Below the pieces are notes generated by a model. The model was not told the DNA's origin. It made no database searches and saw only the letters and a list, made by a program, of their open reading frames with translations. From positions 167,400,001 to 167,464,000 of the forward strand of contig OZ038378.1 in the NCBI GenBank assembly GCA_964036045.1: a DNA stretch of 64,000 nt, given 5' to 3'. The DNA comes from Eutreptiella sp. 'Long Island Sound 2002'. Lineage: Eukaryota; Protista; Euglenida. The position numbers and the translations under genes were made by a program. How positions within the stretch are numbered: position 1 is the stretch's first letter; every line of letters starts with the position of its first letter. Shown one piece after another: positions 7,334-51,463 of this stretch.

Positions 7334-9445
7334 CTACAGCATTCCCTTGGCTTTCTCGATCTTATCCTTCACTTCCTGCCGCTGCATGGGTTTGGGAACG
7401 GTCGTCTTTTCCGCCTTGTCCAAAAGCGGGTTTGCACAGCTTCCGATGTACTCGACGGACATGGTGTACCCTGTGGGAAGGTTCTTGTCGTCCTCTGCAC
7501 TGAAATGCACGCAGTAAGGCAGGTTGTCACGGTAGTATTGCTGGTGCAGGGTCAACACGTAGTGGCCAGGCGTGACGGGGACGGTTTTAATCGTCTCGAA
7601 GCGAGACTTGGACTTCACCGAAGTCAGCTCCAGGCGATTGGTGTCGACGAACTTCTGGTCGCCGTTTCCGGGATACCCGTCTTGGTTGTCGGACGTGCAA
7701 GGCTGCAGGGCCCGCTCCTGCTGGCGGTAAAACTCGATCTCCATTTCCCGCGGCATCGCGGACATGTAGTCCTCTTTGGGCTGGGAAACGTACATTCTCA
7801 ACGTGTACGTCGGCCCCTTCGGCTCATCGTCGTCGGACAGATACAGATCGTCCTCCCTCGCCAGGTCCTGCTTCACGGCCGCAAAACTGTACGCCACGTC
7901 GTTCTCGGCCTTGCGGTCCGACTCCGCGGCGTTTGTCGCCTCTTCCTCGGCCACGGCATTCTGGGCTTCAGGTTGCAATCCGTTCTGGGCCGACGCTGGG
8001 TCCACCACGGTGATGAGGTATTGGTGGGCGTGGAAACAAAGCAGATCCTCCGATCCGGGGGACTTCAACAGGTCGTTGAACATGTCCGGGGCTCCGGCGA
8101 ATTTGTCGACCAGCAGCAAAGTGTTAAACTGCCGGACGAAATCATCGATCTTCATCCAAGTCACGAAGTCGTCGGGTCCCTTGTAGCCTAGGGCCTCCTT
8201 CGTTTCCTTAGTCCACATTTTCGATCCGTCGGCCCACTCCCCGACCCAATCGATCTGCCCATAGGCGTTGCGCATCTTCACCAGCTGTGTCCCCTGGTTC
8301 GGTCCGGGTCCGACGAACTCGTACGTCAGCAACACGGTGCACGCGGTCGCGTTCCACTCGTAGTACATTTCCTCCCGCCGAAGAGACCCGTCAAGGTCAT
8401 CCCCGAAGTGAGGCAGATTGCGGTAACCGTCCCCGGGACCCTCGTCATCTTCTTCCCGATCCAGGAAGACGGTGGAAATCATCAACCCGTTTCTGGTGTA
8501 CTCCATCAGAAGCCACCAAACCAGGCAAGTCGTTTGGATGGACACCTGTTCCACGTCCCAATTGATCAGCTTGCAACGGCCACCTGTCAAGTGCCTGACA
8601 GCGTCCCAGGTATCGCCCGTGTGCAACAAGCAGTAAGAGCCCAGGAACTTGGCGTACGCTTTCTCGAGCAGAAGACTCCAGATTTCGCTGTCTTCAATGG
8701 TCTTCCCGATAACTGGTATATGGTCCACCGCACAGGGAATTTGGTCGTCAACGGTCACACACCTCCAGCCCTGTATGCTGGGATCCTTCGTGTCGATGTG
8801 GTAAAACTGGAAAGTGTACAGGCCAACATCACGGCCTTCGGTCGAGACGAAGAGGCGCTGGAAGGCTTCCTTTTTCATTGCAACCATACTCACTGCCGTC
8901 CAAAAGTAGCCATCTTCAAAAATACCCTCTCTAAACTTTGGCAAGTAGGGAACACCCCATGGCTCAGGTCGTGTGCCCTGGGGAACATTTGCCAACAGCT
9001 TGTTTCCACTTACGAAGAGGGAGAAATGAGGTGCAAGGTGGTGGGGCCGACGGTAAACGTAGACAAGGTTCAGAATGTCCCTGAGAGCGTCCATACGTTG
9101 CATTCTTTGTTCTTGTCGTGCCTGGACTTCGGCTTCTTTCTTCTTCATCTCCCTCTCACTCACAATCTTTGTGGATATCTGCTGGGGAACTACAGTCTCT
9201 GGGAGTTCGAGGGGTGTCTGCTCGGCGTCAACAAATACCTTCTGCGCTTCGCGGCACAACTGTACAACTTGGCCAGTGAATTCTTCACTGGCAAGCATGT
9301 ACTCTGGAAGCTCACCATCAACCGCAAAACGGCTGAACGTCAACTCACGGACGTTTATGCCGAAAGAATTGGTTTCATCATAGTCGATGACAACCACAGG
9401 AGACGCAGATGGGGAGTCCACATCGTCGATTATGAGGGCGGTCAT
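7334..9445 (-). CDS. Calpain-like protein (CysPc domain plus domain III), predicted catalytically inactive; intronless, 703 aa
   Basis: Calpain motifs WRCVTVDDQIPC, IWSLLLEKAYAKFLGSY, AVRHLTGG and LVKMRNAYGQIDWVGEWADGSKMW. The catalytic-Cys region reads EGIFEDGYF (canonical QGxLGDCW) and the His region reads TACTV (canonical HAYSV). A T-rich tract ending in GCAG lies upstream of the ATG. Confidence 0.92.
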   Translation of the reverse strand: MTALIIDDVDSPSASPVVVIDYDETNSFGINVRELTFSRFAVDGELPEYMLASEEFTGQVVQLCREAQKVFVDAEQTPLELPETVVPQQISTKIVSEREMKKKEAEVQARQEQRMQRMDALRDILNLVYVYRRPHHLAPHFSLFVSGNKLLANVPQGTRPEPWGVPYLPKFREGIFEDGYFWTAVSMVAMKKEAFQRLFVSTEGRDVGLYTFQFYHIDTKDPSIQGWRCVTVDDQIPCAVDHIPVIGKTIEDSEIWSLLLEKAYAKFLGSYCLLHTGDTWDAVRHLTGGRCKLINWDVEQVSIQTTCLVWWLLMEYTRNGLMISTVFLDREEDDEGPGDGYRNLPHFGDDLDGSLRREEMYYEWNATACTVLLTYEFVGPGPNQGTQLVKMRNAYGQIDWVGEWADGSKMWTKETKEALGYKGPDDFVTWMKIDDFVRQFNTLLLVDKFAGAPDMFNDLLKSPGSEDLLCFHAHQYLITVVDPASAQNGLQPEAQNAVAEEEATNAAESDRKAENDVAYSFAAVKQDLAREDDLYLSDDDEPKGPTYTLRMYVSQPKEDYMSAMPREMEIEFYRQQERALQPCTSDNQDGYPGNGDQKFVDTNRLELTSVKSKSRFETIKTVPVTPGHYVLTLHQQYYRDNLPYCVHFSAEDDKNLPTGYTMSVEYIGSCANPLLDKAEKTTVPKPMQRQEVKDKIEKAKGML

Positions 9446-11843
9446 TTTGAGAACTGCGCACCACCTTACAGCATCTGCAAAAAATAGACTTCAAGCAACA
9501 CCTTGACTTAACACGCACATAACAGCAAGTATGTTCGGCTGGGACAAATGAAAGTTTTTGGTGTGCTTGGTTTCACCGGGGTCACTCAAAACATTCAATG
9601 GTTTTCGGATGATTGGCGAGACGAAAGCTTGTCAACTGACCTCGTGTTCTTGGAAGATTGCTAAACCTTACTTGCAGACAAGCAAAAGAAAGCAATCATG
9701 CGTGCGCCACAGTGGTGCTCTTTGCGCGATCTCACCACGCCAGTTGTTATTTGTCCCCATTTGAGGCTTTCTGCAGTGACAATTCTTCAGCTACCATGGC
9801 CTGTGTTTTATCCTGGTTTGGCCATCGCCAAGCTTGAAGACCACTCACCAGGAGACACAACGCGGTTTGACAGTGCATCACTCGGTTTAATTTCAGAACT
9901 TTACTACGCTCAAGACCACCGTACATGTAGCCACATGACACAAGACTGCGGAATCGGGACTTGAAATGTCAACTTGCAGACTGGGGCAGGCTGGCCCAAA
10001 TTTGTGGTAAAGTCGGCATCGGGTGTGGCAGGACGCATAAAGTCAGCTCAAAGATTCCAGGTTCCGGCGAGTGTGAAACAACTCGAAAGCAAATCGAACG
10101 CTCCCTGTGAAGTAAATATTGGCGTCCATGGTGCACCTGAATTATAGTGCAGGTTAGAAAGGCAGAATGAAAGGCATGTGTTGAGATTGAATCCGAAAGC
10201 AATACAGATGCAAACCGAAAGGTACCAAGTGTGAGGTCTATACCAAGTGTGAGGAACCACTTGAGGCTCAAGTTGAGCAGGAGTGAGATTTTCAGAATCG
10301 TTTGTCACGCGCGCGCTGCACTGAAACCAAGGCCTGGAAGTTTTGAGAAAAATCTTTGAGCCGCTCTTAGCATGCAACCTGTGACGGTAGTCTTTTGGTT
10401 CTGATCAAGTTTTTGTACCGGACTCCATTGGGTAAAAAAGAAGACGCTTTCTTACATCATTCTTCCCGTGTGACGGCAACAACATGGCGAGGGGTATATC
10501 GAGCCATGCGCAGCAAACAAACGATAGGAAATCTGATAACGCAAAATACACCACTACACCGTACAAAACTGCCAACACCACTATCCCCTTGCCCCCCGGT
10601 GACTTGTACCATCTACTTGGTAGACACGGGAAAGTGGTCTTTTCGAAAATGGGTCTCAGATTTTTCTGCTCTCGAGCGTATTGTGACCTATTTTCGTAAT
10701 CGGTGAAGCATGCCGGTTCTCAATGAGGCAGCTTGTTTCATTTTTCAACCGAAAACAGCCTTTTTGGGTAATGACATCATCCTTAACATTACCATCCAAA
10801 TAAGCACATAGCTCGTCAAAACATTGATCCCGAAGAAATTTTGAGGTTCCCCATTGATGGCACAATTCGAAGGCAATTTTGTTGACGTTGACACCATTTT
10901 CTTTGTCACAACCATCAGTGTTGGGTTGCGGCACTCTTAGTGTGATGTCTGTTGACATTTATTTGTCCTTTGTCTTTGATATGACGCAGCAATGCAGCAA
11001 GCATTCGGCGTCTGAGAATGGCAAGCGCTGCAACCATTGAGCATCCATGGGCCCTCGACAAGCTACATTCCACGTCATCCTCAGTTGCTTAGTATCCGTT
11101 GCACCCTTGCACGTGTGTGTGCATGTGTGTCGTGTATTCATGTGTGATGTTCTCGTCCCGCACGCATTTTGGGGCCCATTTGACAAAGCATTTGACACGA
11201 TCCCATCATCAAAGTACGGTCTGGATTGCCATAGTAGGGCTTGGGTTGAGGTTAATGCCCCTACTCCTTTATTTCTTTGTGTGCCGCAAAATTTTCCTTG
11301 ATGGTCTGATAAAGTGTTCTTTTTGAGAGTGGGTCTCATGATTTTTTCCCCAGGAATGGCCCTAATGAAAGTGGTTCTTACAATATTTTTTCCCGGGAAT
11401 ACCCCCGGTATAGAGTGCCAGTTGCCGTGCAGTCACGGTGGTGTGCAGTCACGGGGGGTAGAGTACACACGAACACATCGATGAGTGGTTTACTCACCAC
11501 ACGTGATTTGTTGCACAAGGAGGGTGCATGAGTGTGGTGATGTCTTCCGAAAAATTCATCCGGCGAGGAACGATGGCATAAGGTAAAAGCCCTTAGTGTG
11601 TCGGAGAAATTAGTCTTCGGACTAAGGGCCAGCCTTCATGCTTTGTGTGCTCCCGTTACACAAGCCCACCTACGACGCGGGACCTAGCAAGAAAGTCCGC
11701 ATGGTTTGTTTGATTTTCTATGACAATCGGCGCTCCATTTGATTCATTCCTCGTCGGGGCGCTCTTTCCCTAACATCATCACGTGCGGATGTTGTCTAGT
11801 GCAAAGTTTTCTCGGCGATAATTTTCTCCATTTCTAGGTCTTG

Positions 11844-13332
11844 ATGATGCGACGAGCACGCCATGCCGTTTCCAAAGTGGTCCGCCAAGGTCCCTCATAT
11901 CACCGAAGAGTACTCGCATGGGAGTCATTAAGATGCCATTCCACTACGTCCGCCCAAGAGCTAGAGGCGTTTCGCGACAGGGTTCGTGCTGTAGTCACCG
12001 ACCCAAAGCTCAATTTCAAGCAACGACGGTACAACCTTGCCTACTTGGCCGAGAGTGTGTTGCCGTATCCGAATCTGGACCCCAAGACCATGGACCTTCT
12101 TGGGCGCAATGTCATTCATGACCTGTTTGAAGGCCCCGCCCCGTATCGACCACGGTACACGTTGCCGGATTACGCAATTAGTTTGAAAAATGGAAGCGCA
12201 TACCTAGAATTGCCTCCTGCAACCACCCTCGATGAAGCTCTTAGCTCTTTGATGATTTTGTGGCACAACACGCCCACCATAACGGGCTTCCCCGTGTGGA
12301 TTGGGGATATCGACGCCCTTTTGGAACCCTACGTTGCCGACATTCCGGATGACATCCTTCGGCAAAGATTGAAGGTGTTTTGGCGCATGGTGGATCGAAT
12401 GTTCCCCGACGGATTTTGTCATGCGAATATCGGCCCAAAGGACTCCCGTGTCGGCAGAATCATCCTTAGCATTGAAAGAGAGTTGCGGCAGACGGCCCCG
12501 AACTTGACATTGAAAGTAGACCCTCAAGTGACCACCCCCGATTTCATTTTGGACGCCATCAACACGTGTGTTGAGGTGTCGAAGCCGCACTTCGTCAACC
12601 ATCGAATGATGGTGGAAGACCTCGGACCGAATTACGGGGTTGCCAGTTGCTACAACAGTTTGAAAGTCGGTGGCGGTAGTCATACCCTTACCCGCCTCAA
12701 CCTCCGCGCGGCTGCCGACGGGTATGCTGGATCCCCGAGCCAATTTTTGAGCCAAGCGTTACCTGAGTATGTGGAACGCACGTGCGAGGTCATCGCGGCG
12801 CGTGTGCGCTATTTGGTTGAGGAGCAGCAATTTTATGAGCACGACTTCATGGTGAAGGAGGGTTTGCTCACCCTCGATAGATTCTCGGCCATGTTCGGTG
12901 TCGTCGGAGTGGCAGAGTTCGTGGAGCACCTTGGGGTAGGAAAGTATGGACTGGACAAGGAGGCGAACGAGTTTGCACTCGCGACCATCAAGGCAATTCA
13001 CAAGCAACTTGAGGGCATTCATGTGCCATATTGTCAAGGCTTCGGGAACCGGGCGATGTTGCATGCCCAAGCAGGGATAAACATCGATGACGGGATTACT
13101 CCTGGTGCAAGAGTGGCGTTTCAAAACGAACCACAAGGGTTATTGGACCATATTTTGGCCGTTGCCCCTGGACATAAGTGGTTTCCATCGGGGGTGTCTG
13201 ACATTTTCCATTTCGAGGAAACCGTCAAAAACGCTCCGGAGGCGGTGGCACGGGTGTTGCATGGAGGCATGGCGGCAGGCCTTCGGGATTTCACGTTTGA
13301 TGTGCGAGGTGGGGAGTTTGTGCGAGTCACAG
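11844..13332 (+). CDS. yjjI: Exon 1 of a YjjI-YjjW fusion: presequence plus YjjI/DUF3029-family glycyl radical enzyme body
   Basis: Family-like N-terminus VVTDPKLNFKQRRYNLAYLAESVLPYP, GPAPYRPRYTLPDY, conserved Cys loop YGVASCYNSL (Cys269, 12648-12650), RFSAMFGVVGVAE, and GLRDFTFDVRGGEFVRVTG. The donor ACAG|GTAAGC at 13333 falls inside the radical Gly codon. A pyrimidine tract plus AG (ATTTTCTCCATTTCTAG) ends at 11837, just before the ATG at 11844. Confidence 0.92.
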
Positions 13333-14260
13333 GTAAGCCACATACATCCCGAGTCCTCCCGCCTCCTTCTCCCGTGCTTGCCAACTAGCACCTTATGCCG
13401 TCCTACATTCGAGAGAAATTTCATCTGCGTCACGTTGGAGATGCGGCATTCATGTGATGAAGCGCTAGTCCGTGCACATGGATGATATCTCTCGGGCCAA
13501 CGTGTCATCTCTGCCCACGCTTGGAGTATTTTTGCCAAACAGCACGTGCTACACCTGCCGCACCCATAGCCCCCGCATCATTTGAGTTGTGAAAAGGTTG
13601 GGTTGAAGTTCTGGGAGTTAGCGGCTTCAGATTGGAAAGGCCGATGTGCTGCGTAAAGGCGGAGCATGAAGACGCAACGACCGCGCCCAGGAGTTGCATG
13701 AAGAGCTCAGTAAAAGGCCCACGAGCGAAACATAGACCACAGGCTGTAAACGAGCCCAAGGAATCAGCCCATGTGCAGCGAATATCCAAACATGTTTTGG
13801 GCAATGGAGGGGTTAGAACGACGTGGACCCCCTCGAATGTTGGCACCCATTTAGTGAGTAAAGACAACCCCTCTCCTCTCCTCCCATGTGTGTATCGTGA
13901 TCCCACCCCGTAAGCGGACCGTTTTGGGCCGGGACGTGCAATGGTTTGCACAGTAGCCATTGCAAAGACCTGGCAATCAAGCCTGAAAATGAGTGTTATG
14001 CAAACCTCTCACTCAGTGCACGCGATGTACAGAATGTTCAGAAATCATTTGGGTGTGCTGTAGAAACCCAAATAGAACTATACACATGCACAGACACGAG
14101 GTGGCTGGATTTTTGCCTTTTAGTGTTTGTACGTTGGTGATAAGGAACCGAGGTATTGACGTCTGATGTCGAAGGGCTCTCATGAATCTGCCAGGTGCAG
14201 TAAGAGAAATCCTCTCCGTTGCGAGAAAGATTGATTGCGATGCCCGCCCACGTATTGCAG

Positions 14261-14706
14261 GGTACCTGATCCGGCGGGCGGATGCAGAGCAATTTGAAGA
14301 CCGAGGCTCCCGTATCCACAGCGATGTCTTCGGGGCCTACGTGACCCAACTTCGTGGCCTGTTCAACCGTCCAGCGCGTGCGTTGCCCGATGATCCATTC
14401 CAGGGGCTCGTGAGCCACGTCATTCCGTTTAGTGTGGTGGATGGCCCTGGCAGTCGCATGGCCATCTTCCTCCAAGAGTGCAACCTGCGCTGCATCCACT
14501 GTCATAACCCTTCGACCCTTGGGTCATGCGACGGCTGTGGGGTCTGTGCAGAGACGTGTCCCGAGGGGAATCTGCAGGTGAAGAGCAGTGCAGTCCGGGG
14601 CCCATACGTTGAGTGGGACGAGTCGAAATGCCTGCAATGCGGCCTGTGTCTGGCGAGTTGCCGCCGCCTCGGCGATCCGCACGCCCGATGGAGGACAGCC
14701 ACGGAG
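14261..14706 (+). CDS. yjjW: Exon 2 of the fusion: YjjI C-terminal segment running in frame into the YjjW radical-SAM activase N-terminus
   Basis: Acceptor ATTGCAG|GG restores V-T-G-Y. The frame reads [17 protein letters not shown]...[52 protein letters not shown]. It has the CxxxCxxC motif (14479-14502) and ferredoxin-type [12 protein letters not shown] and [11 protein letters not shown]. Donor GAG|GTCCGT at 14707. Confidence 0.92.
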
Positions 14707-14973
14707 GTCCGTCCCCAACCCCCTGCCCGTCCCCCTCACCATTGCTATCCCCACTCAGTGCAAGCCGATCTCCGTCACGCCAACTGCATCCGAGTCCCTT
14801 CATCGTGCGTGACGATCTAACACAATTGGTGTGCGGTAGGTGTACTTCCGTATTCACTTACGGGTCTATTTCCGGTTCTACTTCCGGGTCGACATGCGGG
14901 TTTTGTTTTCCTGTTATTCAGCAACTCAGCGGAACTTGGGCATGCAATGCATGTGACCAACACCTGTTGTCAG

Positions 14974-15303
14974 GTGGTGGATGACATCGCGAAGGGCGCC
15001 GGCATGCTCGATGGAGTGACCATCACTGGGGGAGAGCCCACATTGCAGCCCACATTTGTCGCCGCGGTCTCCTCGATGCTGAAAGCGGACCCCCGGACGC
15101 GAGACCTGCACCGGCTGCTTGACAGCAACGGCGTGGTCCCGCCCGATGTTTGGGACCAGCTTCTGCCGCACGTGGACGGCGTCGCCATCAGCATCAAGGC
15201 AGGCAGTGCCGAAGCGTACGAGCGCGTAACGGGCCGCAAGGATTGTCTTCCGGCGGTCCGGCAAACGCTGCAGTCGCTGCACGAAAGAGGCAAGCTACTG
15301 GAG
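14974..15303 (+). CDS. yjjW: Exon 3 of the fusion: radical-SAM activase core
   Basis: Acceptor TTGTCAG|. Reads VVDDIAKGAGMLDGVTITGGEPTLQ (GGE motif), LLDSNG, LLPHVDGVAISIKA and RGKLLE. Donor GAG|GTCTGT at 15304. Phase 0 at both ends. Confidence 0.9.
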
Positions 15304-18135
15304 GTCTGTGTGCCTGGGTCTTCGTGTTCTTCGTTCCTGAAACAGCCACAAAACGGAGGCTTTCGCAATAAGTTTGGACTGGTCGAGTCTGGTTTCCGCC
15401 ACCCCTCCCCTGACCCCTGGACACGCCATACCGCCCCCCCATCCCCCGCAATCATGACTGGCTCACCGTCGCCACGGCTCTTTTGCCGCCGGCAGAGAAG
15501 CATTGTTTGAGGCCAAATGTGGCCTGGATGGTTGTGGTGGAGGAGATGGGGCGTGTTCCAAAAAGGCCGGTCGGTGACCTCATGCTGCAACTGGTGCTCA
15601 GTGCCTTGTCTTTGGTGTGGCCTGCGTTTGACGTGTTTGTCGGGAATTGTGAGGAGGGAAAGCGCAGGCTTGTGGGTCAGGGTCGAATGTTGGTCCCATA
15701 CCGTGGACGCGTCCACCCCCATCCGGCACCACCAGGCCTCACGTGCAGTCGTTCCCATGACCTGCGGGATCCCTGGCTCAGTCAACCCAAGGCCCCCCTC
15801 CCTCCCTCCCTCGTCTTTCCTTCCACTCCTCTTTGAAGTTGTGTGCCTTTGAGTGTGCCTTTGAGTGGTTGCATTCCAGTGGCTCTTGGTAGGGGGCTGT
15901 GGTAACCAGGGCAAGTCTGCCAAAGGTGCCACCTGCACCTTCGCTTAGCTCACCTGAATTAGGTTTTCCCCCCTCCCTCGCGTTCCCAACCCGCTCCACA
16001 CCAGCACAAAGAAACCCCACCAATCAGCCTGCTCAAAGGTTTTTCAGTGCTGCAGGGGGGGGGGGATTGGGGGGGTCTTTGAGAATTGACACCCCCCCCC
16101 CCTGAGGATATGCCATGAGTGGGTTGGGATTTTTATGTCCAGGGTCCTCAAGGACGGCGGTTTAGTGCATCTTTTTATAGGCCTATCTTGGTCAATTCTG
16201 CAGCCACATTGATTTCTCCATTTTGGGGACATTTTGGGGACAAGGCAGTGGTTATGGACCCATATGATTTCCTCCCACTTTGGGGACGCTCTCACCCACC
16301 AAATTGCAACCCCCCAGAACAGTATGACATGGTAACCTGCCAGCCCTCTGCCTCTCCCCTCCAACTGAAGTCCTGCATGGGTTGTGGGTAATGTGTGTGC
16401 GCCGAGAAGGCCAGGGTTGGGTGGGTGGGTGCCTTGGTTGACCCGGGGGGGCGGATTGGTGGGTGGGTAAGTTCTGAGTGGCTGGGTCCAGTCCCCCCCC
16501 CCCCGCCCACCCGTAGCTAAACAAAGCCTTGAGCCTGCTGCAGTAGATCTGCTTGCCCTTGGCAGGAGTAATGGGGCTGTGATATTGTTTACTTTTCGTT
16601 ACCGTTGGCACACTGCACAGACGAAGCAACAAAAAAACCAGTTGCAAAATGCCTGGACACACTGCACACCGCTGCCGGGTAACACTTGATCTAGAACCCC
16701 CTGGCCCTATGTTACATTTCCCAAATTATTGGTGGTGAGCACGCTTCTGTCTTGGGAAACACTTTGTGTGAAGCATGCTGGTGCCCGCATGGGAGGGACG
16801 CCAAGGGCAGAAGCAGCGCTTGTGAGCAGAGGGACAACTTTCCCACTATCACCGAGGAACAGTACTTTTCCACTGTGGTTTCGAACAAGCAATGTAAATA
16901 ATTTCAACAAAAACCTAATCAGTACGTACACCCAGAAGTACTAACTGGCAAATTTACTCAGCCTTCATAGCAACCCCCCAAAAAACAATACGCGCCACTG
17001 TGGGATTAGGTGGTGGCCTCCCCTACCATCAGGCAGTCACGGAGGAAGGTTCTACTGCAGGGGTTTAGGGATTGAGGCATCGTGAGCCCTCTGTGCAGCA
17101 GGTGGACGTGGTTGTAGCATACACGAGAGCTGCCTGCCCCTCCGCCTCCACATGGAGACCCAAAACTTTGTTTGCTGATGTCGGATTTGAAATGGAGGAG
17201 GTGCCTTGCCTTCAAAGGGACACCGCCCCCCCAAAAAGCCTGATATATGAATAATCCAGTCCACCCTGGAAAGGAGCTGTGAACCCGTTGGCCTGCTTCA
17301 GCAGATCCGGTCTGCCTTCAACAGAAGTCACAATGCAACCTGAGCAAAAGGGGAAATGTATTCTTGGTGAACAGCTGTTAAAACACTATTTGGATTCCAC
17401 TTGTACGTCCTTATGCCCAGCACTGTAGACTACTTGCACATGTGTTCTTATGGTCGCATGTTTCTCTATCCCCCCAAACCAACCCCCCCGAGTAAACCGT
17501 GATTCCGACACCGGATCCGCGTGGCCAAAGAGGGTCAGCAGCAATGCAAGCGCAGGAACAGGCCCTAAGCCATGGAAAACACTCTTCCTAATCTGTATTC
17601 CATGGCCCCTAGATAGAGCAGAGCAAGACATTGGCGTGGAAGGCAGGAACCTGCTGTCCCAAGGTAGTAGAGGCCCGTTCCATTGGAGGGAGGGACGCAC
17701 CAATAAGCTCACCAAAAGGCCTGACCAGCGGGATACACCAGAGTACTGACACTGTGACTAATATTGATGAACAATCGGCAGTGAAGGTCGTGTGGCAGGG
17801 GCGACTGGAGCAAACACGTGGACAAACCGGACCCATTTGCAGCCCCAGCCCCCCCCCCCCCCTGAGGCGATTAGGTGTCGGAAACGTCCATAAACTGCAA
17901 CTGCGAGTCAAGCAATGTGTGGTGGAGTAGTGGTGTCAAGCCCGAGTTTGGCTCTCAATTTGAAAGCGAACAAGAAGATAAACCAGGGTGCAGGGGAAGA
18001 GGGGAGGAGTGCAGGGAGCACCCCGTCGCTGCCTTTGTTGGGTTGTAAATTGGGGCCCCCTTCCCAGAAGCGTGAGGCTTGCCGACGCGGCTATGGCAAG
18101 CCCTACCCCTCAGAACGCCCCCATTCGCCTTCCAG

Positions 18136-18381
18136 GCCCGCGTGGTGCTGATCGAGGGTGTGAACGACACACAGGAGGAGTTGCAGCTGATGGCCCAATT
18201 GTTGCAGGAGGCGGCCCCGGGGGTGAGTGTTCGGGTCGTTCCTTTCAGCCCCCATGGTGTACGCCCTGAGTACGGGCATTTACGGGCACCTCCGCCCGAC
18301 ACCGTGTTGCATGCCCAGCAGATGTTGGCTTCGCAAGCCCAAGGCCCGCCGCAGGGCTGGCACGCCTGCAGACTGCCGTAG
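18136..18381 (+). CDS. yjjW: Exon 4 (terminal) of the fusion: activase C-terminus
   Basis: Acceptor CCTTCCAG|. Reads ARVVLIEGVNDTQEELQLMAQLL...VRVVPFSPHGV, matching the activase pattern RxxxIPGxND ... PFHxxG. TAG stop at 18379-18381. The four exons total 2511 nt = 836 aa plus stop. Confidence 0.85.
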   Translation, partial: ARVVLIEGVNDTQEELQLMAQLLQEAAPGVSVRVVPFSPHGVRPEYGHLRAPPPDTVLHAQQMLASQAQGPPQGWHACRLP

Positions 18382-19599
18382 GGCGTGCAACAGTGGGCAA
18401 CACCAGTGAAGGAAAACATGGAGTGGTTCTGCATTTGGCCGGCTCAAGACTGCCGTGTGGTCTAGACAAAACTTCCACCTTCACGCGCCAGGGTAGAGTG
18501 CTAGACAACCTTCCGCAGCCCCCTTCACAACCCCCTTTGCTACGATGCTCCATGCCCGACCCTTCTTTCTGCCCCAGCCCTGCCACATACACCGCTAACC
18601 ACAAGGATGGGGGATGCAGGGCAAAGGGGTTGTCCAGCGGCCGCTGACCTCGGCCGGCATGTCAAGCCTCTCCTGCTGCCGTCTCCCTGGTCAACATCAG
18701 TATGGCCTTTAATGGGCTCGTGGCTTCCACAATAGTGAGGCAACACCGCTGCACTCCAGAGGACTGGGAGTCGGACATGTGACCACAATTTCCTGGGCTC
18801 TATTCCGAACACCCGGCTTGCCAGTCCAGGGACCGGGACAAGGCTAACCTTTTGAGCCGCTTAATCTAGAAGCAGAGGCCCACAAAAAGAGACGCCACAT
18901 CCATCACGCCAGAATTTGCTCAAATGGGTCTCCCCTCATCCATTGCAGGCGTGCACACGCGCACACAAGCAGGAGGATGAGGAGATGACGTGATCAATGA
19001 TTGATGCCGTGCGACAACCCCATGGTGCCCGACGGACCAGGCCGGCGGAATGCATGGTGGCGCCTCTCTCTCCATAGTCCTTTGCGTTGACCAATTGGCC
19101 TGGAGCTGGGGTAGTTCGACAGCTTCTGGTCTCCGGCAAACCCCCCTGGGCGCCGATAAGGCGTCCGTGGCTGGAACCTGATCCCAGGCCCTGCAAGGGA
19201 GCAGGGAGTACCTGCTCAGGGCCTCTGGCCTACAGCGCATGAGGGCTGACCATATCTCCTCACGGCCATGTGCACCGTGCATAGGGTCGATATCCTAAAA
19301 CCCTGTGCACCTCGCACGCCAGCTCTGTGCAAGATGGCGTGGGCTATGCCCCCCCCCCCCCACCTGGGAGAACGTCACTTGGCCCAAAAAGCATAGGTAC
19401 TACTAGAAATTTTTTTTCTTTAGGTTATTCTAGAATTCGGGGAGGGAGACCGTCACTTGGAGACCGTCCCCCCCCCCCCCCGGGGAGACTGTCACGCGCT
19501 AGGGGGGGGAGATTGCACGGGGGGGGGAGGCAAGCCAGGTGTCATAGGGGGCGCACTTAGCGCAGTGCGCGCACAGTGCAAATATTTGGGTGTCTAGCC

Positions 19600-26546: not shown

Positions 26547-28556
26547 AATTTCCAAACTGATTTCCTTTTGGATATCTTGGCCACTCGCAGTCATCAAATA
26601 TCTTATGTAAAGCATGTTTTAGACCCTTTTTATGTGTCCCCCCCCCCTATTTCGGTGTTTTTGGATGCGGGCAAGGGCCTAGGGCACAATCTGCTTGTGC
26701 AATTTTCCACCCTCTGCGGCACAAAAATGGAATTTCCGAAACCGATTTTCTTGATATTCTGACCATTTACAATGATCAAACCAGCTGTCCCCACAGGCGT
26801 CCACTTGTGGACATGCATGACCTGCATGAAGTTTGTGGTTATGGTTTTAGTGGTTGTACATACGCTAGGCTCACGCCTAACTGCGTCTGCTTTGTTCATA
26901 GCTCATATGCGAACTTTGGACTCATGTGGCGCCGGAACACAAAAAAAAATTACAATGATCAAATATCTTATGTAAAGCATGTTTTAGACCCTGTTCATAT
27001 GTTTTTCATGCGCCTGAACCCGACTCGGCCCACCTCCCCGCCCCTGGGGTCGGGGGCTCCGGAACGACTTTGTGACTGATTGACTGACTGTGCTCCCTCT
27101 TCCAGGTGCCTTGCTGATAGGCAATAGAATTGCTGTTTCAGGGTTTTCAGTGGCAATTTCCAAAAAGCAAAATAGCTGTTCTAACAAGGAAGGTCCTTGT
27201 CGAAAATCTTTTGTGACAAAATGTTTTTTCCAATTAAAACCTGTTTTCAACAAAAAGTTTTTTCAACAAAAAAAACCCCCACAAACCTTTTTTCAGCAAA
27301 AAAAATTTTCAACACAACTTTTTTTCCAACAAAAAGTTTCTAGGAAAATTGCTTTCCTAACAAAATTTTCTAACAAAAATCCTTTTTGCAATCCAAAATT
27401 TTTTCAACAAAAATATTTTCCAACAAAGAATTTCTTTTAAAAACAAATTTCTTTGCAACGATTTTTTTTTTCAAATTTCAAATTTCACCGAAAATTCTTT
27501 TGCATCTAACGGTATACCCAAATGCTGCCAAAATGGCACTTGGCTGGCCAACTGGCCGGAACTGATTTTTTCAACTCATGTGTGCGGCGCAACGTGCAAA
27601 AATGTTTCCGTTTTCGCCGGGAGCGAGTTTGGGTGGATTCGACTCGCTTAAAAATCCGACGTTTCCCCACCAGAGTCCACCCCTGAGGAGACCCCCACTG
27701 CATGCATTTCTTCCATGGGCTCCAAACCCGCTGTTGCTTGGACAAGGTGTCCTTCAGAGGAACCCCCCCCACCAACCCAGGTATAGACACATTTGCTGCC
27801 ACCAAGGCAATCCACTTGTCACAACCCATTGCATTTTGACATTCTATTGCCTCACCCTGCTTGCGTCCAAGAACACGTTCCTAACATATTTGGAGTGGTC
27901 TTGTGCATGGCCAAACCGGGTTCTGGTGCTGTTGCAGAGGGAAGGGGATGAATCGGAGGGGGCTGAGTACAGCACGGACGTTAGTGACACCCGCTTGCGC
28001 CCGCATTTTTTGGACGGCTTAAGTGCCGGCATGAGCCAGACGTGAACAAAGCATTGCAGGGGGGTTAATCAAAAGTAATCCTGAAGGAGCCTAAAGGCCC
28101 TGAGACTGACCTGAAACCCAATCAAAGGGAGCGCCTCACAGTGTGTTGCTGGGCAGCATGGACATTGGTGGCCGCGCCTCACGGCGCCTTGCGGGACAAC
28201 CCGGACAATGTTTGTTGCGCCTTCACCACGTCGAGACATGTTGTACTGTTGTGGATGCAGCGGCCATCGCTGATTTGTGGCCCAGCAACAGTGGGTGTCA
28301 GTTCTGTCACTGTCAACCATGGTCTTTGGTGAATAGTGTTTGCCCTTGTGGGTGTGGTGGTCCTTGCGAGTCTGCGCCAGTGCCCTTGCGAGTCTGCGCC
28401 GGTGCCCCCTGGAGCAAAGCAAGCCGATGCGTCACTGCTCTGAAACCTGGGTCGAACCCCTGGAACCAGTCCCATGGCACTCTGGTACAGCCCCTCCCTG
28501 AGGCTGTACCGGAGGTGGGGGGTCGATGACGAGAACGTATCGAAGACACACACACT

Positions 28557-28557
<1 letters not shown>

Positions 28558-28599
<42 letters not shown>
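28558..28599 (+). repeat. (AG)21 microsatellite ending 8 nt upstream of the ART start codon
   Basis: Direct reading of the sequence. Confidence 0.95.
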
Positions 28600-28601
<2 letters not shown>

Positions 28602-28606
28602 CCGCA

Positions 28607-29791
28607 ATGATGTCGGAAGCCCTCGCTCTTGTGGCTCACCTGCGCGCTGCCCGTGTGCCTGTCCGCTCCGCGTATCCGCAGTGGGCTTTTGCCATGTCCG
28701 AAGACGCCGGCCCCGGCGCTGACAAGGTCGCGGCACCAGGCCGCCTCATTTTCGAGCCCCTCCAGCAGCTCCGCCAAGCGTGGGACGCGCAGAAGGCGGA
28801 CCACCACGTCGGCTGGTGCGAGATGGTGTCGTCGCTGAGCACGTTCGCGCGCGACGTGGTGACGTGGATCGCGCTCCAGCCCAACCCGGGGGCCTACATG
28901 AAGCCGGCCCTGGTCGCGAAGACCCTCAGGGACTGCGAGCAGCTCCTGGACACCCTCGCCGTCGTGCAGCACCGCCTGTTCGGCCGCCACGCGGACAACC
29001 CCGCGGCGCCCGCGCGGAGCGCGGACGGCGTTCTGCACGCGGACGACGGTATTTTCCCGCTCTTTGACGGGGCCGTGCCCACGGCCCTGCGGGACGCGCT
29101 CGATCTGGCGGCCGAAGGCGCCAAGCACCCGGAGGGCAGCGGTGGCCAGCCGGCCCCCCTGTCGGTAGACGACGTCCTGGCGGCGGTGCGGGACCGGCCC
29201 TGCCCCGCCATCACCGGCTACACCCTCGAGACCCCGCTGTACCTCATGTGCAATCGGGCCATGCGCGAGTGGAAGCACCGCCCGGTGGCGTTCGAGGAGA
29301 CGTGGCGGCCGTTCGCGCACTGCCTCGACCGCGAGCTGCGGGGGCTGCCAGGGTACGAGGGCGACGCGTACCGCGCGGTGGGCTTCCGTGTGCCGCGGGA
29401 CCTGTACGCGGAAGGGGCCGTGGTGACGTGGAACCAGCCCTCCAGCGCCAGTGAGGACGCCCGAGTGGCGCGGGAGAATCTCAGCGCAGGCGACGCCGGA
29501 GGCCGTGACTGCCCTCAGGGGACGCTGCTGGTTCTCCGGTCGGAGGGCGGCGGGCGGGCAGTGGGCAAGCACTCGGCATACCCCGAGGAGAAGGAGGTGC
29601 TGTTCCCCGCCGGGACGCAGTTCCAGGTGCTGCGGCGGGGGACGGAGGGGCTCAAGCAGCGGCTGGGGGCCGCCATGCAGTGCTCGCTCGCGGACGTCGA
29701 TGTGTACGAGTTGCGGGAGGTTGAGCTGCTGGACGGTTGGAGGGGACTGAAACGGTACGTGGACCCGGTGCGCAACGCAGAGCTACTGCAG
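28607..29791 (+). CDS. Exon 1 of an ADP-ribosyltransferase-ankyrin protein: helical N-domain plus R-S-E (ARTC-type) mono-ART domain
   Basis: YTLETPLYLMCNRAMR, AYRAV (catalytic Arg), WNQPSSAS (S-x-S) and SAYPEEKEVLFPAGTQFQV (E-x-E). Strong GC3 coding bias ends at the putative donor CTGCAG|GTGGTG (29792). The in-frame ATG at 28607 follows the (AG)n tract. Confidence 0.85.
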
Positions 29792-31060
29792 GTGGTGTCC
29801 CCTCGGCGCCCTTCCCATCGGCAATCGTGCGATCGCACCTCCAACCATCCCTCCAACGAGATTCCGGCCGGTCGAGAGATGAGAGCATACGGCACACCTG
29901 TGCGTCCAGGTTCAAACCCAAGTTCAGAGAAACTGCCCCGTCGGACTCTGTTGAGCACCTAAGGTCGAGGGTGCGAACCCGAGTATTGACCTCGTTGGTT
30001 GGGACCACGCCTCGTCGCTGCACTGGCGTGTCGGTGAGTGGTCGGCCGGGACTTTGGCAGGAGTCAATTTTGTGTGGAAAATTTCGTTTTTCAGATTGGG
30101 GCCAAAATTTTACCCACGAATTTTTTTGAGCGCAATTTGGAACAGGCAAAGGCAAAAAGGTGTGCTTCATATATAGAAGAGCCCTGGCACAAGTGATGTG
30201 CTGTATAAAACAAAGAGGCAGCCTCATCACACCCCTTCCCGGAGGCATTACCCCCCTCAATATGGAGAGCCAACCCCAGGCCTACGCCTATGGCTTGCAG
30301 AGAAAGAGCCATTCCATACGGATGTTAGAGGTGCTTCACCATCTACTCCTAAGGACATCGCCTCCACAAGGGCAAGAGCAAGGCTCCGCCAGCGGGGCGG
30401 TAGAACTGGGTCCAAGCGCAGGTGTTCCGATGCTGAAGTTGTTCTCTTTTGTCGAAGTCCACGGGCCCAAGGGAGGTGCGTTGTCCAAACACCACAAGGT
30501 GCTGTGTGCAATCTGTGTTCTCCGCAAGGTCAGAGAAGGAAGCCACCCTGCACACCCACATTAGGCACCGGGTGGACGGTTTGGAGGGGGGGTGTTGCAA
30601 GCACTGGGGAACACACGTTCTTGGGATTTGCCTTGGCATCCATGCATGTGGTCCATGGTGGGTGCGACCACCCCGAACTTGGCTTGCAATCCGGGCAATA
30701 CAGGCTGTGCTGGGCAGCAAGCGTAGCCTAGTGCGGGCCTCTACGTGTGTCGTTTAGCGCGATTCTGAGGGCTTGGCAAACACAAACAGTTGGGGGCTGC
30801 CTGTCGAGTGGCCTGGCAACTGGATTTCTAGCCACACGACGCGAGGCGAACCCTATCTTGGCCTTCGCCTGATCTTCGATGAATCGGGCCAGAATGGTGC
30901 CAACACGGCCCAAGGGCGGGCAAAGACGAGGCCTGGGTGGACGCAGGCTCACGTTGGTGCTGTTGGTTCATGGGGCCAGGGGTGCAAGCAAAGCCACGCA
31001 GTGTTGCATGTGCCGCGTTGCACGCGCTGCTGGCGCCCCAGCGCAGGTTTCGGGCTGCAG

Positions 31061-32606: not shown

Positions 32607-33120
32607 GTCACTCAGCCATCGCCGCAGTATCCAGGCAGAATTGGGCTGTCCAGCAGACCCGGGCGGACTTCTCCATAGCAAGGAGGTATATCGGGGCAGG
32701 CCCGGGCGCCCGGGTCGTAAGGGGGAAGCCTGGTGGCACTCTGTCCGCGCGGACATACACGGCACTCTTTCCCACGGATACCCGAATGCAACGCCAATCC
32801 GGTAACGTCCACCTGCACTAAGCTCAAGTGAAACCGCCTGCAGCGGCCAGAGAGCCAAACAAGCACCCAAATCCCTGTTTTCCATCCCCAACTCCATCTC
32901 CAGTCAATTCTATGATGCAAAAAACTTTTCTGCCACCCAAATCAATGGTGTCACCCGGATCAGCTATGATTTCCAGTCAGTTCTGCAGACGTGCATGCCC
33001 CCTGCATTAATGGCCACCATTTGCTGCACGGTGGGGCATAAGCCATGAAGGCCTGTAAGGCCCGTTCCATCGCATGAGGCCCACTGTTATGTGGATCCGA
33101 ACGTTGCCTCATTCTCACAG

Positions 33121-34371
33121 GCCGGTCAAGTTGACCTACTCCGGGTCTACGCATTGGGGCAAGATGAGGGTATCTGTTGCCTTGCGCTGCGGACCGCCAG
33201 CAAGTACGGACGCAAGGAATGCATCGAGTTCTTGGTGCAGGAGTGCAACGCCGACGTCAACCGTGCCTCAGAAGATGGCACTACTGCGTTGATAGAAGCA
33301 ACACAAAACGGACAACAGGCGTGCCTTGAGTTTCTGGTGCGTGAGTGCGACGCCGACGTCAATCACGCCGCCAACGACGGGTACACTGCATTGATCTTTG
33401 CAGCGCTCAATGGGCACCGAGGGTGCATGGAGTTCTTGGTGCGGCACTGCGAGGTCGATGTCAACCACGCAGATAATGATGGCTACACTGCGTTGATGAC
33501 AGCGACGTACAGCGGACATCGGGAGTGCGTGGAGTTCTTGACCCGCGAGTGCAACGCCGATGTCGGCCTCGCCTCCAACGACGGCCACACCGCGTTGATC
33601 TTGGCCGCGCGGAGTGGACACCGGGGCTGCCTCGAGTTTCTTGTGCGGGAGTGCCAGGCGGATGTTAACAGCGTCCTCAACGATGGCTACACGGCGTTGA
33701 TGCTGGCGACCCACGGCGGACACCGGGGCTGCGTGGAGTTCTTGGGGCGCGAGTGCGGCGCCGACGTCAACCGCGTCGCACACGATGGCTACACGGCGTT
33801 GATTTTGGCGGCGACCGGGCACCAGGACTGCCTGAAGTTCTTGGTGCAGGAGTGCAAGGCGGATGTCAACCACACCATCAACGACGGCTACACGGCGCTG
33901 ATGATGGCCACGCACAGCGGGCACCAGGGCTGCGTGGAGTTGTTGGTGCGTGAGTGTGGCGCGGACGTCAACCGCGCCAACAACGCCGGCCACACAGCGT
34001 TGATTCTGGCCGCACAAAACGGACATCGGGGCTGCATTGAGTTGTTCGTGCATGAGGGCCAGGCCGATGTCAACCATGCGGCCCATGATGGGTGCACTGC
34101 GCTGATGAGAGCTGCGCTGAACGGACACCAGGGGTGCCTCGAGTTTTTGGTGCGGGAGTGCAAGGCCGACGTCAACCATGCTGACAACGATGGGTATACC
34201 GCGCTGATGGAAGCGGCACAAAATGGACACCAGGGGTGCATTGAGTTTTTGACTTGGGAGTGCAAGGCCGATGTCAACCACGCTGCGTTTGATGGGTATA
34301 CGGCGTTGATGATCGCGGAAGAAAATGGGCACCATGAATGTGTTGCACTGCTGCAATCTGCCATGGCGCAG
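33121..34371 (+). CDS. Exon 3 of the ART-ankyrin gene: ~12 tandem ankyrin repeats (34-aa period)
   Basis: Consensus GYTALxxAAxxGHxGCxEFLVRECxADVNxxxND is repeated about 12 times. Acceptor TTCTCACAG| at 33120 gives the in-frame join WICE|AGQVDLLR. Putative donor GCAG|GTATCG at 34372; otherwise the ORF runs to a stop at 34488. Confidence 0.9.
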
Positions 34372-34877
34372 GTATCGGCAGGGTTTTGGCTTGTGCGTGA
34401 AATGTTGCGGTTGTCAGAAGTCACCCCTGCCCCCCTCCCCCCCCCGCATTGGATGTGTGCACCCTCAACACAATCAACCAAACACTAAGGTGGATCATAC
34501 CGGATGGAGGCCCGGCCGTGGGAATGGTCTAAAGTTGGACCTGGGCCCAACCAGAGGGGTTGGCAAGTGCCCCAGCGGAAGGTGGCTTGAAGGCCTACAT
34601 TACCACGGCCTTGGGCAAGGAGGTGGCAAGGAAGTGTGCAGCTTTCCAGAAACAGAAGCCAAGAGAGGTGCACCAATATCATGAGCACATTGCGGGCGTG
34701 TGGGATAGCAACCAACCACACCCGGTGCTTAGGGAGCGAGAGCAAGTGTCGGTGGTAGTGGTAGGGACGGAGGAGGGGTGAGCAAAAAATGGTGTGCCCG
34801 GTGGTTGGGAACGGGAGGAGCACACGTGGAAAAGGAAGCCACAAGTGCAACAACAACACCGGGTGTGACAATAGCAC

Positions 34878-50361: not shown

Positions 50362-50387
50362 ACTTTCTCAGTGTCTATTTTTTTTTC
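50362..50387 (+). other. Genomic spliced-leader relic upstream of NIF3
   Basis: ACTTTCTCAGTGTCTATTTTTTTTTC versus the Euglena SL as I recall it, ACTTTCTGAGTGTCTATTTTTTTTCG. There is one substitution in the first 16 nt, then a T9 run. It ends 18 nt before the ATG. Confidence 0.8.
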
Positions 50388-50404: not shown

Positions 50405-51463
50405 ATGAGTGTCAAGGCATTCCTCGCTGCAATGGGGCGAATTGCTCCGTTGCATTTGGCTGAGAAATGGGACAACGTCGGACTTTTGGTGGAGCCTACG
50501 ACGCCACGGCCCCTGAAACGGATATTTCTGACGAATGATCTCACGGAGCCGGTGATGCAAGAGGCCATCGATTGGAAAGCTGACTGTGTCATCGCATACC
50601 ATCCCCCAATCTTTGTCCCCTTGAAAAGGCTGACGCAAAAGGACACCAAACAACGCATCGTCATCCAGGCCATTGAGCATGGGATCGCCATTTACTCCCC
50701 CCACACCGCAGCAGACACTGCGTCTATGGGTGTAAACGAGTGGCTCATCGAGGGTTTGGGCGTTGGGACAACGGAGTTCAAGCCCATCGTTGTCAAGTGT
50801 GCAATGCCCAACCACAAACTGGTGGTGACCGGCTTACCAGCCGATGCCCCGGTTTTGGAAAAGATGCTTAGTGATGCCGGGGCTACGATCGATAGCTGCT
50901 ACACCCAACAGCCGTGGGGTGTGCCAAAGGATAGTGCCACATCCAAAGTGCGCTTTGAAGCAGTGGTCACAGACCAACAAAAGACCGAGATTCTCGGGGC
51001 GATCGGCCCGTTGCGGGCCACTGTCGATCTCTATCCGCTCGCAGCGGAGCCCTTGGCCGTGGGATGTGGCCGTGTGGCCGCGTTTCAGACTCCCATACGA
51101 TTGTCGGAGGTCGTGCAGCGGATCAAAGCTCATTTGGGGCTTGCCTTCGTCCGTGTGGCGCACGCAGAGGGGCGCCCAGGGCAGACAGTGGAGGAAGACC
51201 CTCAAATTCGATCTGTGGGGGTGTGCGCAGGCTCCGGGGCTGATTGGTTAAAGACGTGTGATGCAGACCTTGTGTGGACGGGGGAGCTGAGCCATCACGA
51301 CGTGTTGGCCTGCGTGGCCAGTGGCAAGTGCGTGGTCTTGTGCGACCACAGCAATACTGAGAGGGGTTGGCTGAGGGATCTGGCACAGCGGCTAAAGACG
51401 GAGTTGGCTGACATTGAGACAAAGTGCTCGTCGGTGGATGCGGACCCTCTGAAGGTGGTGTAA
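50405..51463 (+). CDS. NIF3: NIF3/YbgI-family (NIF3L1-like) dinuclear metal-binding protein; intronless, 352 aa
   Basis: APLHLAEKWDNVGLLVEP, LTNDLTEPVMQEA, IAYHPPIF, YSPHTAAD, VGVCAGSG, TGELSHHD and DHSNTERG are family motifs with the His/Asp/Glu metal ligands intact. Confidence 0.95.
   Translation: MSVKAFLAAMGRIAPLHLAEKWDNVGLLVEPTTPRPLKRIFLTNDLTEPVMQEAIDWKADCVIAYHPPIFVPLKRLTQKDTKQRIVIQAIEHGIAIYSPHTAADTASMGVNEWLIEGLGVGTTEFKPIVVKCAMPNHKLVVTGLPADAPVLEKMLSDAGATIDSCYTQQPWGVPKDSATSKVRFEAVVTDQQKTEILGAIGPLRATVDLYPLAAEPLAVGCGRVAAFQTPIRLSEVVQRIKAHLGLAFVRVAHAEGRPGQTVEEDPQIRSVGVCAGSGADWLKTCDADLVWTGELSHHDVLACVASGKCVVLCDHSNTERGWLRDLAQRLKTELADIETKCSSVDADPLKVV

Follow-up and report, generated by a model that had tools for sequence, protein, structure and literature searches.

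Can a glycyl radical enzyme (GRE) and its activase be parts of one eukaryotic polypeptide? GREs are normally switched on by a separate, catalytically acting activase, and YjjI is one of the last such enzymes of Escherichia coli without a known reaction. The question is raised by a gene of the euglenid Eutreptiella sp. 'Long Island Sound 2002', which lies in a stretch of 64,000 nucleotides (contig OZ038378.1, positions 167,400,001 to 167,464,000, assembly GCA_964036045.1), hereafter the window, and in which an earlier note had read a YjjI-type GRE and its YjjW-type radical S-adenosylmethionine (radical-SAM) activase as a single chain. That observation as a whole, namely the exons, the frame and the presence of YjjI and YjjW in one chain, is confirmed by the analysis reported here. 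On the evidence set out below, we put at about 80% the reading that this is a functional euglenid nuclear gene derived from a transferred bacterial yjjI-yjjW operon, fused by a frame shift, the product of which is mitochondrial and activated within the chain.

Gene structure and expression

Joining the four exons of the gene (Table 1), all of which lie on the + strand and have GT..AG borders, stays in frame and gives 2511 bases, that is, 836 codons and a stop codon, reproducing the 836-residue product that had been deduced earlier from four GT-AG exons. Directly upstream of the start codon, a pyrimidine-rich tract ending in AG is possibly a spliced-leader acceptor followed by a short 5' untranslated region.

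Contigs of RNA and DNA sequencing runs were compared with the window over 12480-18460, the 5' end of the gene lying outside this range. Contigs identical to the exons are found in three estuary metatranscriptome runs, covering exon 1 at 12480-13276 with no mismatch and exon 2 at 14266-14704, and extending at exon 4 beyond 18460. The joint 14706/14974 is seen in two RNA runs (X1 and X2) and the joint 15303/18136 in one (X2), both with no mismatches. Two of the three joints that the earlier note had named for an RNA check are thus seen spliced, and the third, 13332/14261, is not captured in this organism's RNA over the range compared. Around intron 1, where RNA depth is zero, the RNA contig on the exon 1 side breaks off at 13276 and the next one starts at 14266, five bases into exon 2. 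In addition, a DNA run that carries another organism's label extends over exon-intron borders and into all three introns, each of which it covers in part, with no mismatch.

The junction across intron 1 is strongly, albeit indirectly, backed by three features of the sequence. Removal of the intron restores RVTGYL, an invariant motif; the first Met of exon 2 is residue 563, so that no in-frame ATG precedes the activase motif VVDGPGSR; and the frame of exon 1, when read on into intron 1, meets a stop after 18 codons. In intron 3, repeated elements at about 15680-16079 and 16680-16879 stand apart from the remaining intron sequence: in every RNA and DNA run, their summed depth is high and loose ends are numerous.

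The YjjI half

Exon 1 belongs to the YjjI family: it scores 561.1 bits against TIGR04040, above the cut-off of 498.3, over profile positions 1-456 of 497, and matches PF11230 with an E value of 3e-165, together with a weak match to Pfam NRDD. The profile begins at residue 45 of the fusion protein. Both catalytic elements of the family are present, the Cys269 loop and the radical motif RVTG497YL, with intron 1 splitting the codon of Gly497. Among 41 aligned sequences, S268, C269, Y270, N271 and L273 are invariant, and conservation reaches 90% or more at T496 and in the G-Y-L-V-R columns. When bacterial YjjI proteins, the best of which is about 53% identical to the window protein, are aligned with it, exon 2 adds the last ~45 residues missing from exon 1, and the activase starts at the very point at which the bacterial proteins end.

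An AlphaFold model of exon 1 alone has a mean predicted local distance difference test score (pLDDT) of 88.3 and a predicted template modelling score (pTM) of 0.87, and the chain is predicted to adopt the ten-stranded alpha/beta barrel that pyruvate formate-lyase and NrdD have in common. Its closest folds in the PDB are class III ribonucleotide reductases (Foldseek E 1e-14, TM 0.65-0.72), followed by PflD, YbiW, HypD, glycerol dehydratase and benzylsuccinate synthase, all with a probability of 1.00; a HMMER search of the YjjI half against the PDB gave no sequence match. Although class III ribonucleotide reductase is the closest solved fold, it shares only 12-15% sequence identity with the YjjI half, and the window protein does not belong to that family.

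The activase half and the junction

The remainder of the chain carries the complete motif set of an activase of the YjjW/PflC type (DGxGxR, CX3CX2C, GGE and auxiliary clusters): VVDGPGSR at residues 555-562, the radical-SAM site CNLRCIHC at 570-577, two CxxCxxCxxxC clusters at 586-597 and 620-630, TGGEP at 663-667 and IEGVND at 761-766. Like the Cys269 loop and the radical glycine, these motifs are all found at the residues at which they had been read before. Pfam recognises Radical_SAM, Fer4_12 and Fer4 dicluster domains in this half, and the best YjjW is about 43% identical to it. Scored as three separate exon pieces, the activase has TIGR04041 as the best family for every piece, with a summed score below the cut-off of that profile; the profile search proposed earlier for DUF3029/YjjI thus assigns the first half as foreseen, and that for YjjW points the same way. 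Exon 2 occupies TIGR04041 positions 2-94, exon 3 positions 98-201 and exon 4 positions 203-267; given that these positions are contiguous over exons 2-4, the profile runs across the splice sites almost without loss.

The tail of YjjI and the head of the activase lie in one uninterrupted frame within exon 2, with no linker between them. Since the fusion is located inside one exon, it is independent of any splice model, as had been argued from the frame and as is borne out by the bacterial YjjI proteins ending where the activase begins. The whole chain appears to be a GRE with a built-in activase, probably in the mitochondrion.

The bacterial operon and the origin of the fusion

The same two families occur in the same order in the yjjI-yjjW operon of E. 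coli (b4380/b4379; TIGR04040, TIGR04041), and the Cys loop, the RVTGY motif, CX3CX2C and the two ferredoxin-type clusters are common to the bacterial pair and the window gene. In contrast, the bacterial pair consists of two genes in different frames, whereas the window gene is one open reading frame (ORF) with three introns and a candidate N-terminal presequence. That yjjI and yjjW are separate, adjacent bacterial genes in this order holds in 10 of the 10 bacterial loci checked (Anoxybacter, L003, which is a contig of a sequencing-run assembly, E. coli K-12, L008 and six metagenomic loci), and in all of them yjjW overlaps yjjI in the +1 frame. This overlap measures 11-29 bases where genes were called, with the activase start upstream of the yjjI stop. 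In L008, YjjI ends in ...GLFGRRPRHAP and YjjW starts with MPPEDEVRGLLSRVVPFSQVDGPG.

At the window junction, sequence that corresponds to the tail of bacterial YjjI is followed immediately by that of bacterial YjjW from residue 2-3 onwards. Shifting the frame by one base at the overlap would yield just this, a whole enzyme followed without a linker by the activase from residue 2-3, and we infer that such an event gave rise to the fusion. A 5'-truncated remnant in a low-GC bacterial contig (L006:5150-5937, with RNase J, FtsK and Bmp neighbours) carries a YjjI tail and an activase head in frame, followed by a frame shift, and is perhaps what is left of a fused form in bacteria.

As for the function of bacterial YjjI, the statement that its reaction is not established stands, as a preprint of August 2026 still calls YjjI an 'uncharacterized putative GRE', the Gly465 of which was labelled in vivo, though only indirectly, in E. 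coli (10.64898/2026.08.13.742689). The yjjI genes of E. coli and Salmonella are co-expressed with nitrate-respiration genes (PMC3228777). A nap cluster, comprising NapA with a twin-arginine translocation (TAT) signal, two Fer4 proteins and NapB, lies directly upstream of yjjI-yjjW at L016:4254-9412, and also in L009 and L010. Co-expression and the nap genes of these three related metagenomic loci are weak leads that tie bacterial YjjI to nitrate respiration. In Anoxybacter, a gene for an EamA-family transporter (L002:946-1881) lies two genes upstream of yjjI, on the far side of a CheW gene, and in L003 such a gene (1939-2820) is the direct upstream neighbour, possibly hinting at a small-molecule substrate.

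Fused genes in other eukaryotes

The idea that the fusion is peculiar to this genome does not hold, as it is also present in Euglena gracilis and in a second eukaryotic lineage. EG_transcript_2559 of E. gracilis, listed in the supplement of the mitochondrial proteome paper by Hammond et al. 2020 (PMC7403612) together with a partial ortholog from Eutreptiella gymnastica, encodes both halves next to each other in one ORF, which is 5'-partial and 808 residues long; it is filed as 'Unknown' and receives no mention in the main text. It has the same fused architecture and the same gap-free junction as the window protein, and is about 71% identical to it over 107 residues around the junction (hand count). 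This degree of identity indicates that the window is from a different euglenid or that it contains a paralog, and EG_transcript_2559 is, judging by sequence, very probably the ortholog of the window gene. The differences are that EG_transcript_2559 belongs to another species, or else is a paralog that has diverged, and that its 5'-partial ORF does not cover the presequence.

In the same data set, the protein is represented by six unique peptides with an MT/CP value of 'Infinite', and it has an intensity of 1.1-1.8e7 in samples 31-33 and of zero in six others (PMC7403612). Judging from the Mt/W ratio and from the labels of the t-test columns (w, c, m), samples 31-33 appear to be the mitochondrial ones. 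The E. gracilis data thus prove the fusion at the transcript level in a close relative and, at the protein level, are evidence that the product is located in the mitochondrion. The window protein itself begins with 44 residues ahead of the YjjI profile that are a candidate mitochondrial presequence (Table 1), and the AlphaFold model shows the first 32 of these as disordered, in keeping with such a role.

The second lineage came from a search with exon 2, which spans the junction, against 1.84 billion representative proteins. Three fragments spanning the junction were found (P0223, P0245 and P0203), two of which map to the metagenomic contigs L004 (4.2 kb) and L005 (3.7 kb) and the third to the 5'-truncated remnant in bacterial context (RNase J, FtsK) described above; among the best 150 matches of this search there is no full-length fused protein. 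The top match, P0121, is a translated tandem repeat of 3274 residues that matches exon 2 residues 5-35 fifty times, and was set aside as an artefact of summed weak matches. L004 and L005 each contain a complete or nearly complete YjjI-activase fusion (L004:2-2195, L005:329-3134), with five short GT-AG introns at identical positions in the two contigs, none of which is shared with the window gene. The fusion is followed in both by a gene for a family-A DNA polymerase on the opposite strand, for which the best match obtained is 41% identical. A third member of this lineage is P0271, and the junction of all three aligns to that of the window without a gap. An origin of L004/L005 in spirotrich ciliates was considered and is unlikely: spirotrichs reassign TAA and TAG to glutamine, and these ORFs read through under the standard code.

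Between L004 and L005, the proportion of nonsynonymous differences (pN) is 0.11 in the enzyme and 0.22 in the activase, and that of synonymous differences (pS) is about 0.7, a saturated value; as pN is far below pS, both halves are under purifying selection. The activase of this lineage lacks the 48-residue insert that carries both ferredoxin-type clusters, and this loss, in combination with purifying selection, suggests that the auxiliary clusters are dispensable in the fused chain. Further scans yielded one bacterial locus only from genome contigs, no match in a metagenome scan with junction peptides, and only bacterial operons, at about 50% identity, with the YjjI of the L004/L005 lineage as query.

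Phylogeny of the two halves

Trees of the two halves, which had been proposed as a way to look for a single donor, were built with IQ-TREE (LG+C20, posterior mean site frequencies (PMSF)) without the E. gracilis sequence. In the YjjI tree, the three eukaryotic sequences form one clade (97/90) with the L008 protein as its sister (100/97), the window branch being 1.4 changes per site long. The activase tree, which places the window chain among YjjW proteins, has no long branches and gives no long-branch warning, agrees with it: the three eukaryotic sequences are again one clade (99/96), and the YjjW of L008 falls into the next, weakly supported group (68/86). Each eukaryotic lineage, when placed alone, still joins L008, and in both trees the eukaryotes thus group near one bacterial operon.

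Agreeing trees and a shared gap-free junction favour one operon transfer and one fusion. The proposal that a bacterial operon was transferred laterally and collapsed into one ORF is supported in that the nearest relatives of both halves are bacterial and the junction matches the operon overlap. The claim that introns came later is supported as well: the second lineage has the same fusion with introns at other positions, which indicates that they were gained after the fusion. The simplest reading of these sequences would be that descent after the fusion was vertical or from eukaryote to eukaryote, with introns gained later in each lineage.

Genomic context of the gene

The fusion gene is a spliced eukaryotic nuclear gene, with two of its three joints in RNA, its introns in a DNA run and eukaryotic genes on its flanks (Table 1). 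Among the latter is an intronless NIF3 ORF, just upstream of which lies a sequence with three mismatches to the E. gracilis spliced leader, 0 such matches being expected by chance.

Table 1. Features of the fusion gene and of its surroundings in the window
Feature	Position	Strand	Basis
Calpain-type protease ORF	7334-9445	-	Used as eukaryotic context
Pyrimidine-rich tract, AG end at 11836-11837, 6 bases 5' of ATG (possible spliced-leader acceptor)	11821-11843	+	Sequence reading
N-terminal extension, 44 residues before the YjjI profile, 9 R+K versus 3 D+E, no hydrophobic stretch (candidate presequence)	11844-11975	+	
Exon 1: candidate presequence and YjjI to the first base of the Gly497 codon; Cys269 loop at 12636-12662	11844-13332	+	Profiles, motifs
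Intron 1, 928 bases, GTAAG..CAG, phase 1, inside the radical-glycine codon	13333-14260	+	Borders, zero RNA depth
Exon 2: last ~45 residues of YjjI, then VVDGPGSR, CNLRCIHC and both ferredoxin-type clusters	14261-14706	+	Profiles, alignment, motifs
Intron 2, 267 bases, GT..AG	14707-14973	+	Joint in RNA contigs, runs X1 and X2
Exon 3: radical-SAM core, TGGEP at 15025-15039	14974-15303	+	Profiles, motifs, RNA contigs
Intron 3, 2832 bases, GT..AG	15304-18135	+	Joint in RNA contig, run X2
Exon 4: activase C-terminus, IEGVND at 18151-18168, stop codon	18136-18381	+	Profiles, motifs
ORF with arginine ADP-ribosyltransferase domain	28526-29962	+	Eukaryotic context
Long ankyrin-repeat ORF	33091-34488	+	Eukaryotic context
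Euglena-type spliced-leader relic (presumed), just upstream of the NIF3 ORF	50364-50387		
Intronless NIF3 ORF	50405-51463		Eukaryotic context

Proposed mechanism and alternative explanations

The history and the working of the gene may be pictured as follows. A frame-shifting change at the yjjI/yjjW overlap would have removed the YjjI stop, joining the whole enzyme to the whole activase, and the introns and the N-terminal presequence would have been acquired after that. The product would be imported into the mitochondrion, where, at low oxygen, the radical-SAM half, with its SAM-binding 4Fe-4S cluster and two auxiliary clusters, would cleave S-adenosylmethionine and take a hydrogen from the Gly497 of the same chain or of the partner chain in a dimer. 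The glycyl radical would then generate a thiyl radical at Cys269, and this in turn would attack the substrate. Self-activation of this kind is plausible, and both activation within the fused chain and a link to anoxia are inferred. The Euglena mitochondrion is known for anaerobic wax-ester fermentation, and the fused enzyme is probably used during anoxia. For the more far-reaching version, in which a true single-polypeptide, self-activating enzyme of an oxygen-respiring mitochondrion arose once and then spread among distant eukaryotes, we consider the odds to be about even.

Several points weigh against this account. Glycyl radicals are destroyed by oxygen, and a role in a largely aerobic mitochondrion is puzzling. 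The joint across intron 1 is the one that the RNA does not capture, the presequence of the window protein is called from composition alone, and the three activase pieces, scored apart, reach 119.9, 67.4 and 27.9 bits against TIGR04041, which sum to 215 against a cut-off of 250.2. In the YjjI tree, both eukaryotic lineages and their bacterial sister are long branches, with a warning of long-branch attraction, and their grouping may be partly artefactual. The published table for E. gracilis gives no peptide positions and shows no single-piece mature chain (PMC7403612).

The last of these points leaves some room for a polyprotein precursor, that is, one chain made for delivery and cut at or after import into a separate enzyme and activase, as neither the present data nor the published table show an intact chain of ~90 kDa. 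There is a precedent in that some plastid proteins of Euglena are made as polyprotein precursors. What makes a precursor unlikely is the junction itself: there is no linker, the YjjI tail entering the activase at residue 2-3, and three eukaryotic sequences share a junction of equal length that contains neither an inserted spacer nor any recognisable signal for cleavage, so that a cut would fall within the sequence of one of the two enzymes. The missing intron 1 joint bears on another possibility, in which the locus would yield two transcripts, a truncated YjjI mRNA from exon 1 and a trans-spliced activase mRNA from exons 2-4 with its acceptor at 14260; euglenids do trans-splice, and an RNA contig has its edge at 14266. 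However, an mRNA of exons 2-4 would have no in-frame ATG before VVDGPGSR and only Met 563 after it, exon 1 alone would stop 18 codons into the intron without the part that follows the radical glycine, the E. gracilis ortholog is one transcript ORF across the point where exons 1 and 2 meet, and the second eukaryotic lineage has no intron there and a continuous frame. Taken together, these observations render two transcripts very improbable.

Slighter still is the chance that the gene is a functionless, decaying operon relic, a bacterial contaminant or a misassembly, for which one could cite the long YjjI branch (1.4 changes per site) and the lack of an assigned function for the YjjI family. Against decay stand an intact frame of 836 codons with all catalytic motifs kept, strong purifying selection in the sister eukaryotic lineage and detection of the protein in E. 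gracilis. Contamination and misassembly, which the earlier note had named as grounds for giving up the fusion, are contradicted by three spliceosomal introns, two of them confirmed in spliced RNA, by an independent DNA run that matches the exon-intron borders, and by eukaryotic flanking genes. A functional, fused and mitochondrial euglenid gene therefore remains our preferred reading.

Relation to known systems and implications

Two known eukaryotic systems come close to the window gene. Like it, pyruvate formate-lyase (PFL) and its activase in green algae, anaerobic fungi and protists are a GRE and a radical-SAM activase of bacterial origin in an organelle of an anoxia-exposed host. They are, however, separate polypeptides, as opposed to the one chain of the window; PFL also belongs to another GRE family, is ~750 residues long against ~500 for the YjjI half and catalyses a known reaction, and its activase, unlike that of the window, lacks auxiliary clusters. 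A fungal DyP peroxidase fused to a PFL-like glycyl radical domain is likewise a natural eukaryotic fusion, but in that case the partner is a peroxidase and the activase is a separate gene, whereas in the window the partner is the activase (PMC5041501).

No main text in the literature searched describes a eukaryotic YjjI or a natural enzyme-activase fusion. The earlier statement that no description is known is therefore right as far as discussion of the fusion is concerned, but an ORF of this kind sits in a published supplement (PMC7403612), and the fused architecture is already present, unremarked, in public data sets. Orthologs in published tables, even if unremarked, lower the novelty of the finding, and its breadth across eukaryotes, a clear fusion mechanism and the orphan status of the family raise it.

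The gene is a clean case of a bacterial operon of overlapping genes that collapsed into one eukaryotic gene. Covalent fusion fixes the ratio of enzyme to activase at 1:1 and tethers the activase ~60 residues from its target glycine, which bears on how the glycine loop is presented to the activase. If the chain is indeed self-activating, activation would take place within one molecule or dimer, a new way to run this enzyme class, and the protein would be a ready-made tool for the expression of GREs without a separate activase. A eukaryotic YjjI under selection also offers a second, independent biological setting for the hunt for the substrate, and euglenids would, in that event, become a system for finding the reaction of YjjI.

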